DNA of 64,000 nt from sequence record MG592456.1. One strand, 5' to 3'. The position numbers were made by a program, and so were the translations under genes. Of this stretch, positions 14,134-29,354 are shown in pieces; position 1 is the first letter of the stretch, and each line of letters starts with the position of its first letter. A model generated the notes under the pieces. That model was not told the DNA's origin and ran no database searches. It worked only from the letters and a program-made list of their open reading frames with translations.

Positions 14134-14652
14134 TTATTTAGAATTTCGATGTCGTCGAGATTTGCGCTTGGCTTTTCTCAATTCTTTTCGCTTCGCAACT
14201 TTATCTGCTCGACGAACTGCGTCGTAATCCGCAGCACAAGACGCAGCAAACGCATCTGGTTTGAAAACGGGCTCTTGACCCACATACCCGAAGATCGTCC
14301 CTTTAGCCTCGTTATACGCAACGTGAGACTTATGTGCGGGGTCTGGGTTGATATCAACGTGAACTTCAAACCCACGAGTACCACACATTGGCTTGACTTT
14401 CATAGCAGCTTCACCGGCTTTATATACTTCCGTCATGAGTCGACTACGTATGCCGTCTTTACACGACATATATGCTGGTTCAGTCTCAACAACTTTAAAC
14501 ACTTGAGCACCTTTGTTGCCCTCGAAATGAATAATAATTACAGTTGCGTAACTAATCATGTCGCTTTTACGTTTGCTATCGCACCCGACGTACACAGTAC
14601 TGCTCGGATGGCTGTTATTGATAGCAACTTCTATGGATTCCCAATCGAACAT
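14134..14652 (-). CDS. DUF458 RNase-H-like protein
   Basis: VYVGCDS, YATVIIIH, RLMTEV, EVHVDIN, KPDAFAAS..AD motifs; GAGGA RBS before MFDWES. Confidence 0.8.
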   Translation of the reverse strand: MFDWESIEVAINNSHPSSTVYVGCDSKRKSDMISYATVIIIHFEGNKGAQVFKVVETEPAYMSCKDGIRSRLMTEVYKAGEAAMKVKPMCGTRGFEVHVDINPDPAHKSHVAYNEAKGTIFGYVGQEPVFKPDAFAASCAADYDAVRRADKVAKRKELRKAKRKSRRHRNSK

Positions 14653-14668
14653 ATCAATTTCCTCATAC

Positions 14669-14696
14669 AAAAAAGGGTGGCTGATTGCCACCCTTT
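14669..14696 (-). terminator. intrinsic terminator between DUF2828 and DUF458
   Basis: AAAGGGTGGC-AATCA-GCCACCCTTT plus T tract on the minus strand. Confidence 0.75.
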
Positions 14697-14700
14697 ATAT

Positions 14701-16134
14701 TTAAACGTCGTAGCGCTCAACATTAACTGTTTTTAACATGATCTTGACTGGCTCAAGTTCACCGCCCAACAACGAGGTCAGGATTGACGGACTACAGCCT
14801 GATACAAGTGCAGTACCCGCAGTTCCTGTTTTAACAGGGACGTTGCCCGCTCTTGCGTGAATATTCCAGAACACTAGCTGTGGCATGTCGTAACCATGAC
14901 GAGCATAATTCGACTTAATTTCGTCGAAATTGGTTTTATTAGAGGAGCGCCACCCCGCGCTATTCGCCGTGTCGAATTCCATGTCGCTCAAGATTAGCAT
15001 CTTAGTCGGCATTTCACTCTGAGGCAAGTTAGCGCTTGTTGCTCGTTCAAGCAACACATTAAAGCAGCCGCTAATGTTAGTACTCATGTCTTCACCAGCA
15101 CGTGACATGTTGGCTAAACGAGTTTGCAAATTATCACCGATTAACTTGTGAAAGTTAGGGCGACTTGAGAATGTAACGAACTGGTCTTGGAAGACGCCTT
15201 CGTTGCGCTCTGCAATGTAGATACCAAGACTCATAGCGACGTCTTTGCAAGATACACCATCGCCATATGAGTCAGCGCCGTTAATACCACAACCCATAGA
15301 GCCTGATACATCAACTACGGGTAGAATGCGCTCGTCTGAGCCTTCCATGTAGTTCGGAAGTGCTTTCCATTGCTCATTCGCAACAACGGCATTGCCGCGA
15401 CTAACACTACGCACGACATCATATGGGTATACAGCACCCGCATTAATCTTCGCTTCGCCCTTCACAAGTGATTCGATGTAGCTAGAATACTTATCAGTTG
15501 CATTGCGACCGAACGATTTTTGATAGCGTGCTGAAGCTACAGACGGCAACTTACCAAAGTCGATCGCATCCCATTCACGCGCACACATTTTCTGCTCGAC
15601 GGTGTCTGACAATGTACTAAGAATCTTGCGCCATTGCTTTGACTTAATACCAAGAGACTTGATAGTTTTCTTAAACACATGACCGTTTGCGCTACCTTCA
15701 CGAGGGAACCACTTTGCAGCTAACGAGTTTTTATCGTTGACGATTGCATGAGTCCACAATGTGATTGCATCAGCCTCAAGATCTGTACCAAATGCACACA
15801 TCAAGTCATCGAAACGACCCAATTCTGGCACTTTAGACATCACAACACGTGCAATATCAGGGCGATTGACACACAAGCGAGTAAAGATCTTACGGAAAGT
15901 TTGACGTTCCCCAGCTCCACCGCGTACATCACGTGCCCATAGCAAGATTCGAGTTGCCAGCTCAGGATTTTCACCGAATGCTCGATCGAACATACCAAGT
16001 GACTCGTTATTACCACGCATCGCGCCAATAGTAAAAAACAAGTTTAGACACTCGTTGCCTGAAGTGCTGTGAGTCACTGCACCATTTGCGGTACGTGCAT
16101 CGTTTGTTTGCATTGCGTTTAAAAAAGCTGACAT
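14701..16134 (-). CDS. DUF2828 family protein (TROVE-like helical region plus vWA domain; Ro60-like architecture)
   Basis: RDVRGGAGER, KWFPRE, KINAGAVYPYDVV, vWA MIDAS DVSGSM, ILSDMEFD, VFWN. Confidence 0.85.
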   Translation of the reverse strand: MSAFLNAMQTNDARTANGAVTHSTSGNECLNLFFTIGAMRGNNESLGMFDRAFGENPELATRILLWARDVRGGAGERQTFRKIFTRLCVNRPDIARVVMSKVPELGRFDDLMCAFGTDLEADAITLWTHAIVNDKNSLAAKWFPREGSANGHVFKKTIKSLGIKSKQWRKILSTLSDTVEQKMCAREWDAIDFGKLPSVASARYQKSFGRNATDKYSSYIESLVKGEAKINAGAVYPYDVVRSVSRGNAVVANEQWKALPNYMEGSDERILPVVDVSGSMGCGINGADSYGDGVSCKDVAMSLGIYIAERNEGVFQDQFVTFSSRPNFHKLIGDNLQTRLANMSRAGEDMSTNISGCFNVLLERATSANLPQSEMPTKMLILSDMEFDTANSAGWRSSNKTNFDEIKSNYARHGYDMPQLVFWNIHARAGNVPVKTGTAGTALVSGCSPSILTSLLGGELEPVKIMLKTVNVERYDV

Positions 16135-16169
16135 TTTATAATTCCCTAATTTGTTTGCTGTTTAATGTC
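16130..16169 (-). promoter_or_regulatory. CAGCAA-motif leader hairpin sequestering the DUF2828 RBS and start codon
   Basis: GACAUU-AAA-CAGCAAAC-AAAUU-AGGGA(SD)-AUUAUAA-AAUGUC; the closing strand contains the AUG. Confidence 0.7.
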
Positions 16170-16181
16170 GTTAATGAAGTG

Positions 16182-16210
16182 ATTATACATGAATTATCAT
16201 GCGTGTAAAC
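16182..16210 (-). promoter_or_regulatory. T4-type early promoter
   Basis: GTTTAC-N17-TATAAT. Confidence 0.85.
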
Positions 16211-16913: not shown

Positions 16914-18335
16914 TTACAGTGCAGCTACGGTCAAGACAACTGCATCAGATGTCACAGAACCTTCGCTGTTGGTGTAAACAACGCGATATTCGTTAGCATC
17001 AAGACCAACATCAGTCGGATCGATAACAAGTGAATCACCAGTCTCACCATCGATGTCTGCAAAACCACTACCATCATCTACTTGCCATTGCGCATCAGGG
17101 ATTGGATATCCAGTAGCTGATGCAGTGAATGTGGCAATATCGGGTTCAGTAACAGATTCTGCAACTGGCTGCGTGTCAATGGCAGGCAATTCTAGTGCAG
17201 GATCAACGGTCAATACAACTGCATCAGATGTCACAGAGCCTTCACTGTTGGTGTAAACAACACGATATTCGTTACCATCAAGACCAACATCAGTCGGATC
17301 GATAAATAACGCATCACTAGTCTCACCATCGATGTCTGCAAAACCACTACCTTCATCTACTTGCCATTGACTAGTAGGAATCGGATATCCCGTAGCTGAT
17401 GCAGTGAATGTAGCAGCATCAGGGGCATTAACAGATTCTGCTACTGGCTGTGTGTCAATGACCGGCAATTCTAGTGCAGGATCAACTTCTAGTTCAACTG
17501 CGTCAGAGAATACTTCACCTGCATCATTGAACCATCGAGCAGCAACTAAGTAGCCATCCATTGATTCTTCTGCAACGAATGTCAATTCAGGCTCGCGATG
17601 ATCATCTAATGGGTGAGACGTTGACCCGCCATCATCAGAGTAATACCAGCGAACTTCTGGAGTTGGTCGACCGGTTGCGGCACTAGTGAACGTTACTGTT
17701 TCACCCGCATTTGTGTTAACTTCAGCCGGCTGTAGCGTAACGACAGGCAACAACTGAACTGTTAATACAGCGTCTTCGCTCGTTACAACGCCCTCACTGT
17801 TAGTCCATGTCATTGTATACACGTTTCCGTCGTCAGCATCCGCCGCAGTAAACGAATAAGCGGTATTAACCTCACCGATGATGTCAACACCATCTACTTG
17901 CCATTGACCGGTTGGCTCAGGATTGCCATACGCTTCACAAGTGAAACTCACGTTCTCGCCGTCAACGACAGTCATTGAGACTGGCTGTTCGGTGATGATA
18001 GGTAGCGATGGTGCCGCAGTTGGCACAACGTCAATACGAAAGAATCGACTGTTGTGGGACTCGCGCACTAGCAGTGAACTAACTTCACCTTCCAATGCCC
18101 CACCAATCACCTCTTTAACCCACTCAGGGCTACCCGCTTCTGTAATCCCGACTGCAATCATCTTGTCAGAAATTTCTCGATACGGCTGTTGAATGTTTTT
18201 ATACGCAACTACTTGACCATAGTTGAATCGTGTTTTTGATAATGGATACTTAGGATATTCTACCTTGATTGCTGCCAATTCAGCATCATCGATGACAATT
18301 GCCATCCCTAGGTTATCATCAATAGGTGTACTCAT
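16914..18335 (-). CDS. Ig-like (I-set) repeat virion surface protein, Hoc-like
   Basis: four repeats of P.I..QP....V..G..ATF...A.G.P.P..QW...Y.....N..G; the last two are near-identical at DNA level. Confidence 0.8.
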   Translation of the reverse strand: MSTPIDDNLGMAIVIDDAELAAIKVEYPKYPLSKTRFNYGQVVAYKNIQQPYREISDKMIAVGITEAGSPEWVKEVIGGALEGEVSSLLVRESHNSRFFRIDVVPTAAPSLPIITEQPVSMTVVDGENVSFTCEAYGNPEPTGQWQVDGVDIIGEVNTAYSFTAADADDGNVYTMTWTNSEGVVTSEDAVLTVQLLPVVTLQPAEVNTNAGETVTFTSAATGRPTPEVRWYYSDDGGSTSHPLDDHREPELTFVAEESMDGYLVAARWFNDAGEVFSDAVELEVDPALELPVIDTQPVAESVNAPDAATFTASATGYPIPTSQWQVDEGSGFADIDGETSDALFIDPTDVGLDGNEYRVVYTNSEGSVTSDAVVLTVDPALELPAIDTQPVAESVTEPDIATFTASATGYPIPDAQWQVDDGSGFADIDGETGDSLVIDPTDVGLDANEYRVVYTNSEGSVTSDAVVLTVAAL

Positions 18336-20765: not shown

Positions 20766-20914
20766 AGACATCGGTGCAAGTTTTCGATACATTGCAATCG
20801 GATCCGAGTCATTTCCTACTCATCACACCGAGGGCGAACATTATCGCTGAGAAAGCAGCTAGTTGCCCATATTACTTTTATAGTTTAGTTTTTATTAGTT
20901 GCTGAAAAATGTCT
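20766..20914 (-). ncRNA. CAGCAA-motif RNA, long form
   Basis: AGACAUU-UUU-CAGCAACU ... GAUGUCU closing helix; follows tRNA-Ser and precedes a terminator. Confidence 0.5.
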
Positions 20915-20927
20915 TATTTACGTAATC

Positions 20928-21512: not shown

Positions 21513-21588
21513 TGGAGCTGGTACGCAGAATCGAACTGCGACCTAAGGATTTGCAATCCCCTATCCTACCTGATTAGACCATAGGAGC
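21513..21588 (-). tRNA. trnC: tRNA-Cys(GCA) with two C:C mismatches in the acceptor stem
   Basis: GGGGA-TTGCAAA-TCCTT, U73, CCA; the 5' end overlaps the endonuclease ORF. Confidence 0.75.
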
Positions 21589-22197
21589 ATGTTTACAATT
21601 ATCAAAGTGCCACCGTTTCATAACACCGCCCTTGCCAACTTTACCACAATGAGGACACGTGACTTCATCAATCGAGTGTTCTTCATAATGCCTCTTCAAA
21701 CTCTCTGAAATTTTTTGCTTTTGTGATTCAGTCTTATCTTGTTTGCCAATCTTTATACCATGTTCGACCGCCGCAGCATAACGCTCTTCGCCACGTTTTA
21801 CCCAATAATTATCAGCGTACTTCTCTCTGATTTTATCACTCACCGCACGACCAGACAACGTTTTAGAAATTTTCGCCTTAGATTCATCAGTGTGTGGTAT
21901 CCCACTACGATTAAGATGGTCGAACCCACCTTCACCACCCAACTTCAGATTATATGTCATGGAGTTTTCTACAAACTCACGATCAACATACACAGCCTCA
22001 CGCTCGTACATTTCATCAGAACTGTCACATTGTTCTAGAATTTCACACTCGAAGCTATCAACGCCATACTTGTTAATTGCACGTTTCAGAAGCTTACCGG
22101 ATCCGATATACCCATCTTCTAGGTCTTCGGTTTTGTGTGCTCCGATGTAGATCTTACCATTGGTTTTATTAGTGGTTTTATAAACAATATAATACAT
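21574..22197 (-). mobile_element. free-standing Seg-like GIY-YIG homing endonuclease gene with NUMOD3 and C-terminal CPHC..RWHFDNC domain
   Basis: IVY-KTTN..NGKIYIG..K...GYIGSG..L..AI.KYG..F..EIL; inserted in the tRNA cluster as T4 segB is. Confidence 0.85.
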
Positions 22198-24438: not shown

Positions 24439-24543
24439 TGAGTGTGTATTTACCAGCGCACCAGCGTGCATACCAAGCACTGCGAGAATCGAACTCGCGC
24501 CGTTCGTGTAAAAGACGAATTTGTTGTTTGCTGTAAACACTCA
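24439..24543 (-). ncRNA. circularly permuted tRNA mimic (YrlA-like) with CAGCAA motif and Lys anticodon loop
   Basis: terminal helix UGAGUGU/ACACUCA, UUA-CAGCAAAC, UUCGU-CUUUUAC-ACGAA, GCGAG-UUCGAUU-CUCGC T arm, loop-closed GUGC/GCAC acceptor-like stem, D-like arm; no CCA. Confidence 0.8.
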
Positions 24544-24551
24544 ATAGTATT

Positions 24552-25586: not shown

Positions 25587-25721
25587 CTAATATCCCTTTA
25601 ATCTTTGTCTCTGTCTAGCAGCCTTTAACTTAGCACGCTGACCGTATTGCTTTTCTAGTTTAGCACCATGATAACTATGATACTGATAATGACAAGATAA
25701 TTTCTTATAAAGACCTTTCAT
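25587..25721 (-). CDS. small basic hypothetical protein
   Basis: GGGGG RBS before MKGLYKK. Confidence 0.55.
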   Translation of the reverse strand: MKGLYKKLSCHYQYHSYHGAKLEKQYGQRAKLKAARQRQRLKGY

Positions 25722-25747
25722 ATACCCCCCTAGATTTTGATTATAAC

Positions 25748-25805
25748 AGAATGCGTTTTGCTTGAAAGCCAATTTTCAAATTTTGTTGTTTGCTGAATAC
25801 ATTCT
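25748..25805 (-). ncRNA. minimal CAGCAA-motif RNA with Glu-type anticodon loop
   Basis: AGAAUGU-AUU-CAGCAAAC...UUGG-CUUUCAA-GCAA...GCAUUCU. Confidence 0.7.
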
Positions 25806-25836
25806 TAATCTATCACAAGACTCACGCCTTGAAATT

Positions 25837-29230: not shown

Positions 29231-29354
29231 TGGTGGAGAGAGCGGGATTCGAACCACGCGACCGAAAGATTTACTTAGTTAAAAGTTTGCAGTAGGCATT
29301 CTTGTCAGAATACACATAACATTCTTTTGCTCTACCAGACTGAGCTATCTCTCC
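29231..29354 (-). ncRNA. tRNA body with CAGCAA-type insert in the anticodon arm
   Basis: GGAGAGA/UCUCUCC-A-CCA, D arm, bulged T arm; insert GUAUUCU-GACA-AGAAUGC-CUA-CUGCAAAC. Confidence 0.75.

Follow-up and report, generated by a model that had tools for sequence, protein, structure and literature searches.

A putative operator-like copy of a phage small-RNA motif in the mRNA leader of a DUF2828 protein predicted to have a Ro60 fold

The DUF2828 gene and its mRNA leader

The stretch of DNA analysed here (the window) comprises 64 kb of sequence record MG592456.1, from Vibrio phage 1.081.O._10N.286.52.C2, a KVP40-like T4-type phage whose nearest classified relative is VS1, a Schizotequatrovirus. 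Its minus strand contains a gene coding for a protein of the DUF2828 family, and a hairpin of 40 nucleotides (nt) can be drawn in the 5′-terminal part of its mRNA (Table 1). The initial annotation of the window had proposed a promoter of the form GTTTAC-N17-TATAAT and a leader in which two helix arms enclose the octamer CAGCAAAC and the Shine-Dalgarno sequence (SD), with the AUG codon inside the 3′ arm. Every letter of this promoter is present on the minus strand, and the layout of the leader agrees letter for letter. A promoter scan gave TTTACA-N16-TATAAT (11/12 matches) as the top site within 5 kb, coinciding with the GTTTAC -35 element; transcription is predicted to start near position 16175. 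The -35 element is kept in KVP40, VS1, F86, K566, VH7D, L091 and L093, and the distance from the -10 element to the start of the hairpin is 11-14 nt in every promoter-bearing relative. Relatives carry GAGGAA at the position equivalent to the SD of the window, and the N-terminus of the protein, MSxF, is conserved.

By itself, the leader hairpin is weak and within chance. By chance, 0.42 occurrences of the literal pattern GACATT-N5-35-AATGTC would be expected per window, and 6% of shuffles contained two or more. RNAfold gave the leader a z of 0.10 relative to shuffled sequences and a minimum free energy structure without the helix, and for these reasons the hairpin was dropped as a thermodynamic structure. 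With an energy of only -1 to -2 kcal/mol, the helix is too weak to block ribosomes, which fits an operator that needs a protein. The octamer CAGCAAAC, which the initial annotation took as the conserved unit, fared no better: its exact sequence is not enriched in the window (five sites, versus 2.5 expected) and the leaders of KVP40, which has CAGCAAUU, and F86 differ from it. It was rejected as the motif and replaced by a stem plus the core (U)UACAGCA(A). A DNA-level reading, in which TTTGCTG (the reverse complement) would be a T4 MotA box, was also discarded, since there is no usable -10 element, the orientation is wrong and the variable complementary arms favour RNA.

Similarity of the leader to free-standing RNAs of the tRNA cluster

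A covariance model, R1, was built from 21 short elements in distant phage loci of the IMG/VR database, none of them belonging to this genus (consensus aAAaGGuUcc-UUACAGCAA...ggAaCCuGgu). The window was searched with it on both strands with filters off (128 kb in total; the E-values are rough). The four best hits, all on the minus strand, were three elements of the tRNA region, named copies b, c and a, followed by the leader (Table 1); the hit ranking fifth scored 12.5 bits (E 1), ∼5 bits below the leader. The composite motif is therefore shared by the leader and RNAs of the tRNA cluster, the link that the initial annotation had drawn. A regulon, with the motif in further leaders of the window, found no support, R1 giving no further match below E = 1. 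The conserved ends AAG...CUG(U) and the UUA preceding CAGCAA are present in copy b and missing from the leader, whose flanks read UAAC-GACAUU-AAA-CAGCAA and ...AAUGUC-AGC.

Table 1. Coordinates of the features discussed in the text (R1 values are scores with the covariance model)
Feature	Coordinates	Strand	Remarks
DUF2828/DUF7788 gene	14701-16134	minus	477 aa; Pfam DUF2828 and DUF7788
-35 element GTTTAC(A)	16210-16204	minus	GTTTAC at 16210-16205; T4-early-type sigma-70 promoter
-10 element TATAAT	16187-16182	minus	
Leader (R1 hit)	16126-16173	minus	17.7 bits, E 0.04
Leader 5′ arm GACAUU	16169-16164	minus	
Leader single-stranded core	16163-16153	minus	AAA (16163-16161) and CAGCAAAC (16160-16153); counterpart of the family UUACAGCAA in the R1 alignment
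Leader SD AGGGA	16147-16143	minus	within the loop, 8 nt before the AUG
Leader 3′ arm AAUGUC	16135-16130	minus	contains the start codon (16134-16132)
Copy a	24439-24543	minus	∼105-nt RNA between tRNA-Gln and tRNA-Thr; R1 hit 24460-24546 (true 3′ arm further downstream), 19.5 bits, E 0.013
Copy b	25745-25808	minus	64-nt free-standing hairpin RNA between tRNA-Phe and a small ORF; 34.6 bits, E 1e-6
Copy c	20833-20917	minus	past the last tRNA (Ser); arms GACAUU/AAUGUU, UUU-CAGCAAC; 24.9 bits, E 4.4e-4
PF04308 gene	14134-14691	minus	RNase H-like, YkuK-type; directly downstream of DUF2828, past a terminator-like hairpin (14696-14672)
Small basic ORF	25600-25720	minus	∼39 aa
ORF within the tRNA cluster	21574-22197	minus	207 aa
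tRNA-like RNA	29234-29354	minus	121 nt
Gene for immunoglobulin-like repeat protein	16914-18335	minus	473 aa; two genes upstream of DUF2828

Two of the remaining CAGCAAAC sites occupy gaps within the tRNA cluster and share the strand of the leader, with a 6-7-nt arm 3-4 nt upstream and its complement downstream. Copy b reads UUAAGAAUGU-AUU-CAGCAAAC...GCAUUCUGUU, with arms AGAAUG-UAUU-CAGCAAAC...CAUUCU. Copy a has a terminal stem (UGAGUGU/ACACUCA), followed by UUA-CAGCAAAC, around a tRNA-like part with a T-arm that scores 34.9 bits with the Rfam tRNA model (positions 24474-24542); it gave no match to Rfam YrlA at E≤5, and its architecture is that of the YrlA-like RNAs of locus L052 and phage LeBron described below. 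The arms of copy c are nearly identical to those of the leader. Elements matching copies a and b were found at equivalent places in KVP40, F86, K566 and D479 with different complementary arms; for the copy b orthologue these are AGCAAU in KVP40 and UGGAUA in D479. At gathering thresholds, Rfam reports only tRNAs in the window.

The 3′-end of copy b lies 27 nt before a small basic open reading frame (ORF) with a strong SD (AGGGGGG), so that copy b, too, may be located in a 5′ leader. Elsewhere in the window, a tRNA-like RNA with a good acceptor stem, D-arm, T-arm and CCA-like end has ∼65 nt inserted at the anticodon region; it scores 52 bits with the Rfam tRNA model and is not called by ARAGORN. 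Its insert holds CUACUGCAAAC, which narrowly fails to match the motif (R1 12.2 bits). Similar ‘pseudo’ tRNAs of 110-124 nt are annotated in KVP40, F86, K566, D479 and Cronobacter phage S13.

Conservation of the leader element among KVP40-like phages

Inspection of homologous leaders, a check suggested in the initial annotation, found the motif, with compensatory arms, in 10 of the 11 other KVP40-like phages, L092 being the one without it; in 11 of the 12 relatives, window included, the element overlaps the SD or the start codon of its own mRNA. The R1 scores of these leaders were 31.3 bits for L091, 26.6 for VH7D, 22.3 for KVP40, 20.5 for VS1, 19.9 for K566, 16.7 for L090, 16.2 for F86, 16.1 for D479, 13.9 for L093 and 11.6 for L094. 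CAGCA is invariant across the 11 leaders and its flanks vary. The arms are GACAUU/AAUGUC in eight phages (window included), and L094 shows a compensatory change (GACAUA/UAUGUC). In D479 (AGAAAU/AUUUCU) and L093 (GAAAUU/GAUUUC) a different arm pair is present, the 3′ arm of which overlaps the SD rather than the AUG. The element of L091 is of full size (62 nt) and its AUG is still within the 3′ arm. These arm swaps preserve complementarity at 58-68% protein identity, and covariation among relatives thus supports the predicted leader helix.

It is this comparison (the match to an independently built model, the leaders of relatives and the compensatory arm changes) that makes the leader motif more than chance. 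A fortuitous resemblance would require that a 6-bp AU-rich repeat and an A-rich hexamer came together by accident, and that their conservation merely reflected short divergence and the coding constraint on AAUGUC. The insignificance of the hairpin alone and the identical arms of six relatives would agree with this. However, R1 matches all leaders of the clade but that of L092, complementarity survives the arm swaps, and an equivalent layout is found in the unrelated lineages L044, L052, L076, L098 and L102; we consider a chance origin very improbable.

A family of RNAs adjoining DUF2828 genes

Comparison beyond the genus defines the motif as a terminal stem of 6-9 bp and variable sequence followed, on its 5′ side, by a predicted single-stranded (U)UACAGCAA. 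It adjoins DUF2828 genes in phages of Proteobacteria, Firmicutes, Actinobacteria and Campylobacterota and invariably shares the strand of the gene. A total of 80 IMG/VR loci encoding DUF2828 relatives at 41-77% identity were scanned, and in most lineages elements with stems of 7-9 bp adjoin the gene. In a strict scan (≤1.5 kb upstream or 0.8 kb downstream), a copy was detected beside DUF2828 in 34 of 52 distinct IMG/VR loci. An unbiased stem test was performed on sites chosen by sequence only, counting in-register perfect stems of ≥7 bp. On the gene strand, 43 of 190 CAGCAA sites have such a stem. The opposite strand gave 3 of 107, five control hexamers 13 of 435 and TTACAGCAA 18 of 27. The sequence TACAGCAA occurs 63 times on the gene strand versus 7 on the opposite one. 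In an alignment (A3) of the 21 short elements from which R1 was built, pairing reached 95.9% and double changes were seen at 6/7 pairs; since these elements had been selected for stems, this covariation count is biased and the sequence-only site count is the fair test. Taken over the loci compared, the terminal helix is real across the family. R1 was also run on 44 independent loci taken from GTDB and metagenome-assembled genomes (the latter possibly phage contigs). Of these loci, 24 yielded hits at E<0.01, 29 in total, and every one of the 29 was on the gene strand.

Well-known phages are included. Listeria phage P100 has two copies upstream of the gene (38.7 and 37.1 bits), Felixounavirus VpaE1 has four between the tRNAs immediately downstream of DUF2828, Campylobacter phage NCTC12673 has two between tRNA-Tyr and the ATG, and Mycobacterium phage LeBron has two immediately past the DUF2828 stop codon. 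The largest cluster seen is that of Aeromonas phage 4_4572 (L098), an array of eight tandem copies (19-41 bits; positions 493-701 and 1100-1466 of the locus) upstream of DUF2828.

The elements fall into two size classes, a hairpin of ∼52-70 nt and a form of ∼95-135 nt in which the terminal stem and CAGCAA surround a tRNA-like domain. Aligned at full length to Rfam YrlA (RF02553), the long forms of L052 and LeBron scored 38.2 bits (E 7e-5) and 39.8 bits (E 1e-5), respectively, both below the gathering score of 69; T- and D-arms are present in both RNAs. The terminal module is AGAUUCAC-UA-CAGCAA...GUGAAUCU in L052 and GGACUC-UAG-CAGCAAUU...GAGUCC in LeBron.

In several lineages the element meets the ribosome binding site. 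Besides overlapping the SD in D479 and L093, the 3′ arm abuts it in L044, L052, L098 and L102, where elements ending in ...CU(G) are placed against GAA(A)GGAG: AAUUCU-GAAGGAG in L044, GCAAACU-GAAAGGAGG in L052, ACAUUCU-GAAAGGAG in Aeromonas phage 4_4572 and UUAACCUG-AAAGGA in L102. The ribosome binding site is targeted repeatedly by the motif, in the KVP40-like clade and in these four lineages.

Some further elements were observed in the same loci. In L104 (1426-1484), L109 (1430-1486) and the leader of L077, a core variant, GUUCCGCA(A/C), takes the place of UUACAGCAA; these elements keep the terminal stem and the AGG...CCUG ends, and 15-17 nt separate their 3′-end from the start codon of DUF2828. 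In LeBron (L088 4458-4711), a hairpin, the YrlA-like RNA (39.8 bits) and a second hairpin follow in tandem directly past the stop codon of gp53 (‘Ro-like RNA binding protein’), each starting with UGUG..., ending in ...CAGU and containing CAGCAAU; a strong terminator comes next. In P100, a match to ROOL RNA (L089 1468-2019, upstream of gp165) scores 86 bits (E 3e-16) and so narrowly misses the gathering score of 99; the two stem-UUACAGCAA copies lie ∼650 nt, and the DUF2828 gene ∼1 kb, downstream of it.

The DUF2828 protein and its relation to Ro60

The window protein was assigned to PHROG 850 (‘RNA-binding protein’), and ‘Ro-like RNA binding protein’ is already the name of homologues in some database records. 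At least 711 sequenced phages encode DUF2828 proteins, Felix O1-like, KVP40-like and P100/A511-like phages and cluster L mycobacteriophages among them. AlphaFold2, run with a 32-sequence alignment, gave a model of the window protein with a pLDDT of 86.8 and a pTM of 0.87. The ten best Foldseek matches to this model in the PDB were all Ro60 structures, over the full length (E 4e-8 to 2e-6, TM 0.47-0.65), including Xenopus Ro, D. radiodurans Rsr and Thermus phage phiLo Ro60; the next hits were vWA domains only. The model combines a HEAT-like ring with a vWA domain containing a MIDAS, and the DxSxS residues (D275/S277/S279) are invariant. The DUF2828 protein is accordingly predicted to have the Ro60 fold, which makes it a credible RNA binder. 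Sequence searches with the window protein found only DUF2828 and DUF7788, and no TROVE domain, in Pfam, no Ro60 with phmmer in the PDB, and no match in NCBIfam. A literature search for DUF2828, UCP015417 and the motif string returned nothing relevant.

The phage system thus resembles Ro60/Rsr and their Y RNAs in its predicted ring-plus-vWA fold and in the adjacent, co-oriented RNA genes, and its long RNA form resembles YrlA in having paired 5′- and 3′-ends around a tRNA-like T-arm/D-arm domain. It differs from Ro60 in belonging to the DUF2828/DUF7788 family, without a TROVE hit and with 12-16% identity to Ro60. Unlike that of Y RNAs, the conserved phage module is a single-stranded UUACAGCAA beside a stem, not a bulged Ro-binding helix or a CGAA motif; unlike YrlA, the phage family also includes a minimal hairpin of ∼60 nt. 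The pairing of Ro60-type proteins with Y RNA genes next to their own is known (PMC4201824), and the Ro60 of Thermus phage phiLo binds two RNAs, Yrl1 and Yrl2, encoded just upstream of its gene (PMC12135203). The search of Chen et al. (2014) was confined to TROVE-annotated genomes. In the Felixounavirus Bas63, gp130 has been described as structurally Ro60-like and directly upstream of tRNA genes, some of which the authors speculate to be Y RNAs, and it was reported to counter the ppl defence system (PhageMaP preprint, 10.1101/2024.10.10.617714). Judging from gene order, Bas63 gp130 is probably a DUF2828 orthologue; VpaE1, of the same genus, has four copies of the motif among its tRNAs. Neither an RNA motif nor autoregulation is put forward in that preprint.

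The motif might instead be read by some other factor, such as a host or phage ribonuclease, another RNA-binding protein or the PF04308 protein, as a shared processing or stability signal linked to DUF2828 by neighbourhood only. The copies between tRNAs lie where processing must happen, the DUF2828 gene is followed by a PF04308 gene in the window, KVP40 (KVP40.0299), L092 and L094, and the similar Class I RNA of Dictyostelium (see below) is bound directly by an RRM protein. However, the motif tracks DUF2828 over phages of four bacterial phyla whether or not tRNA clusters or PF04308 are nearby, the only other constant being its gene-strand orientation, and the pairing of Ro60-type proteins with neighbouring Y RNA genes also speaks against this alternative, which seems to us quite unlikely. 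Independently of this, the PF04308 product could be a functional partner of the DUF2828 protein.

A model for autogenous repression through the leader

We propose, with moderate confidence, the leader to be an operator through which the DUF2828 protein represses its own translation by ligand mimicry. The leader hairpin would be a shortened, cis-acting copy of the conserved small-RNA module that accompanies DUF2828 proteins in phages, the stem plus UUACAGCAA being the protein-binding module, and copies a, b and c would be the Y RNA-like partners of the protein, released from the tRNA-cluster transcript. Protein in excess of free RNA would bind this imitation on the mRNA that encodes it. Because the loop contains the SD and the 3′ arm the AUG, entry of the 30S subunit into the bound leader would be blocked, and this feedback would keep the level of protein matched to that of the RNA. 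We infer both the binding of the motif by the DUF2828 protein and the repression that would follow from it.

Autogenous operators that mimic a ligand are known for the MS2 coat protein (a hairpin holding the replicase AUG), E. coli ThrRS, the ribosomal proteins S8, L1 and L20, and T4 RegA, gp32 and gp43. The leader is similar to these in being a weak hairpin at the ribosome binding site that encloses the SD or the AUG and resembles a putative free RNA ligand, and in lying on the protein’s own early mRNA in a T4-type phage. It differs from them in that the putative repressor is of the Ro60 fold and that the ligands would be Y-like small RNAs and not rRNA, tRNA or genomic RNA. For Ro60, we know of no autoregulatory leader copy, nor of a stoichiometric feedback with its RNAs of the kind described.

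Several observations weigh against this model. The leader is the weakest member of the family in the window, with 17.7 bits, a 6-bp AU-rich stem, AAA in place of UUA and none of the AAG...CUGU ends, and its 3′ arm is also under coding constraint (AUG UCA). L092, a close relative, has lost the motif from its leader; phiAS5 and EniLVp02 have no leader copy and none within 1.5 kb. The covariation counted in A3 is subject to the selection mentioned above, and the binder could be another factor. Finally, the strict scan of the 52 loci placed the RNA downstream of the gene in 24 cases, upstream in 11 and at the leader or ribosome binding site in only two. Since in distant lineages the RNA is mostly downstream, leader autoregulation cannot be the general rule of the family; the leader position is a special feature of KVP40-like phages and a few further lineages. 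The expectation that leaders of DUF2828 homologues would carry the motif thus held for that clade and a few lineages, and failed for most distant ones, where the RNA lies outside the leader.

The distribution of the elements also bears on a second possibility, that the leader binds the Ro-like protein without repression, serving for co-translational ribonucleoprotein assembly, for protection or marking of the 5′-end, or being the remnant of a small-RNA gene processed from the 5′ untranslated region (UTR); the full-size copies that immediately precede the SD in other lineages may be products of such processing. Many lineages have full-size, co-oriented elements in the 5′- or 3′-UTR that resemble co-transcribed small RNAs, as do the three RNAs of LeBron followed by a terminator and the array of eight in Aeromonas phage 4_4572. 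The two Yrl RNAs of phiLo are encoded just upstream of its Ro60 gene (PMC12135203). Against this, the KVP40-like element is shortened and has its 3′ arm on the AUG or SD, so that excision would destroy the mRNA, and this placement is retained through the arm swaps; we regard a non-repressive role as unlikely.

Overall, the comparisons partly support a Ro/Y-like ribonucleoprotein with an operator-like RNA copy on the mRNA of its own protein. A conserved RNA partner motif turns DUF2828 into a testable ribonucleoprotein of this type and accounts for several unannotated gaps and ‘pseudo-tRNAs’ of phage tRNA clusters, and with the leader copy it should be easy to test whether the RNA is recognised by a Ro-like protein and whether the two are coupled by stoichiometric feedback.

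Resemblance to Dictyostelium Class I RNAs

Full-length alignments to Rfam family RF01414 (Dictyostelium Class I RNA) scored 24.7 bits for copy b, 27.4 for its KVP40 orthologue, 23.1 for a P100 copy and 18.5 for the L052 leader. All phage scores lie below the gathering score of 41.5 and the window leader was not reported, so that membership in RF01414 is not indicated. In large-scale scans of ∼92 kb (E up to 3-10), only copy b, KVP40 and P100 matched, the L052 hit coming from a local scan; all four hits fall exactly on phage elements. The RF01414 consensus has a 6-bp stem, then CUUACAGCAAU, an A/U-rich loop, the 3′ stem and UG. Class I RNAs are 42-65 nt long, with a short, sequence-variable stem, a motif of 11 nt alongside the 5′ arm and ends AAG...CUGU in which G pairs with C, and were reported to be unique to Dictyostelia (Kjellin et al. 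2021, PMC7919456). The likeness of the phage RNAs extends to the motif next to the 5′ arm, of ∼11 nt, where the Rfam consensus CCUUACAGCAA matches phage ccUUACAGCAA. Copy b, of ∼60 nt and with an A/U-rich variable loop, has the AAG...CUGU ends with G pairing C (UUAAGAAUGU...GCAUUCUGUU). These descriptive features are found in copy b and most free-standing phage elements, and in part in the leader (the stem and CAGCAA, not the ends). Unlike Class I RNAs, the phage elements occur outside dictyostelids, have no DUSE promoter ∼60 nt upstream and would be transcribed from sigma-70-type promoters or with the tRNA cluster.

It is conceivable, and put forward tentatively rather than as the expected outcome, that the phage stem-UUACAGCAA RNAs and Class I RNAs form one family, by descent or transfer, the conserved partner of which would be a Ro60-like protein of the DUF2828 type. 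The DUF2828 family is annotated in eukaryotes as well (plant genes); a homologue search with the DUF2828 protein listed only phage-like proteins. In Dictyostelium, the proven direct binder of Class I RNA is the RRM protein CIBP/Rnp1A. The uncharacterised DDB_G0281243, one of four proteins pulled down with the Class I RNA DdR-21, is the obvious candidate partner to consider. If the proposal were true, phages and eukaryotes would have a second Ro/Y-like ribonucleoprotein in common, and Class I RNAs would gain a candidate protein partner and function. The near-identity in architecture calls into question the claim that Class I RNAs are confined to social amoebae and makes their function approachable.

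Other genes of the window

The protein encoded two genes upstream of DUF2828 contains four immunoglobulin-like repeats (Pfam Ig_3 and I-set, E 1e-28 to 1e-31). Within the tRNA cluster, the N-terminus (YIVYKTTNKTNGKIYIGAH...) of the product of a 207-codon ORF reads, by eye only, like that of a GIY-YIG homing endonuclease; the tRNA clusters of F86 and D479 contain HNH endonuclease genes.

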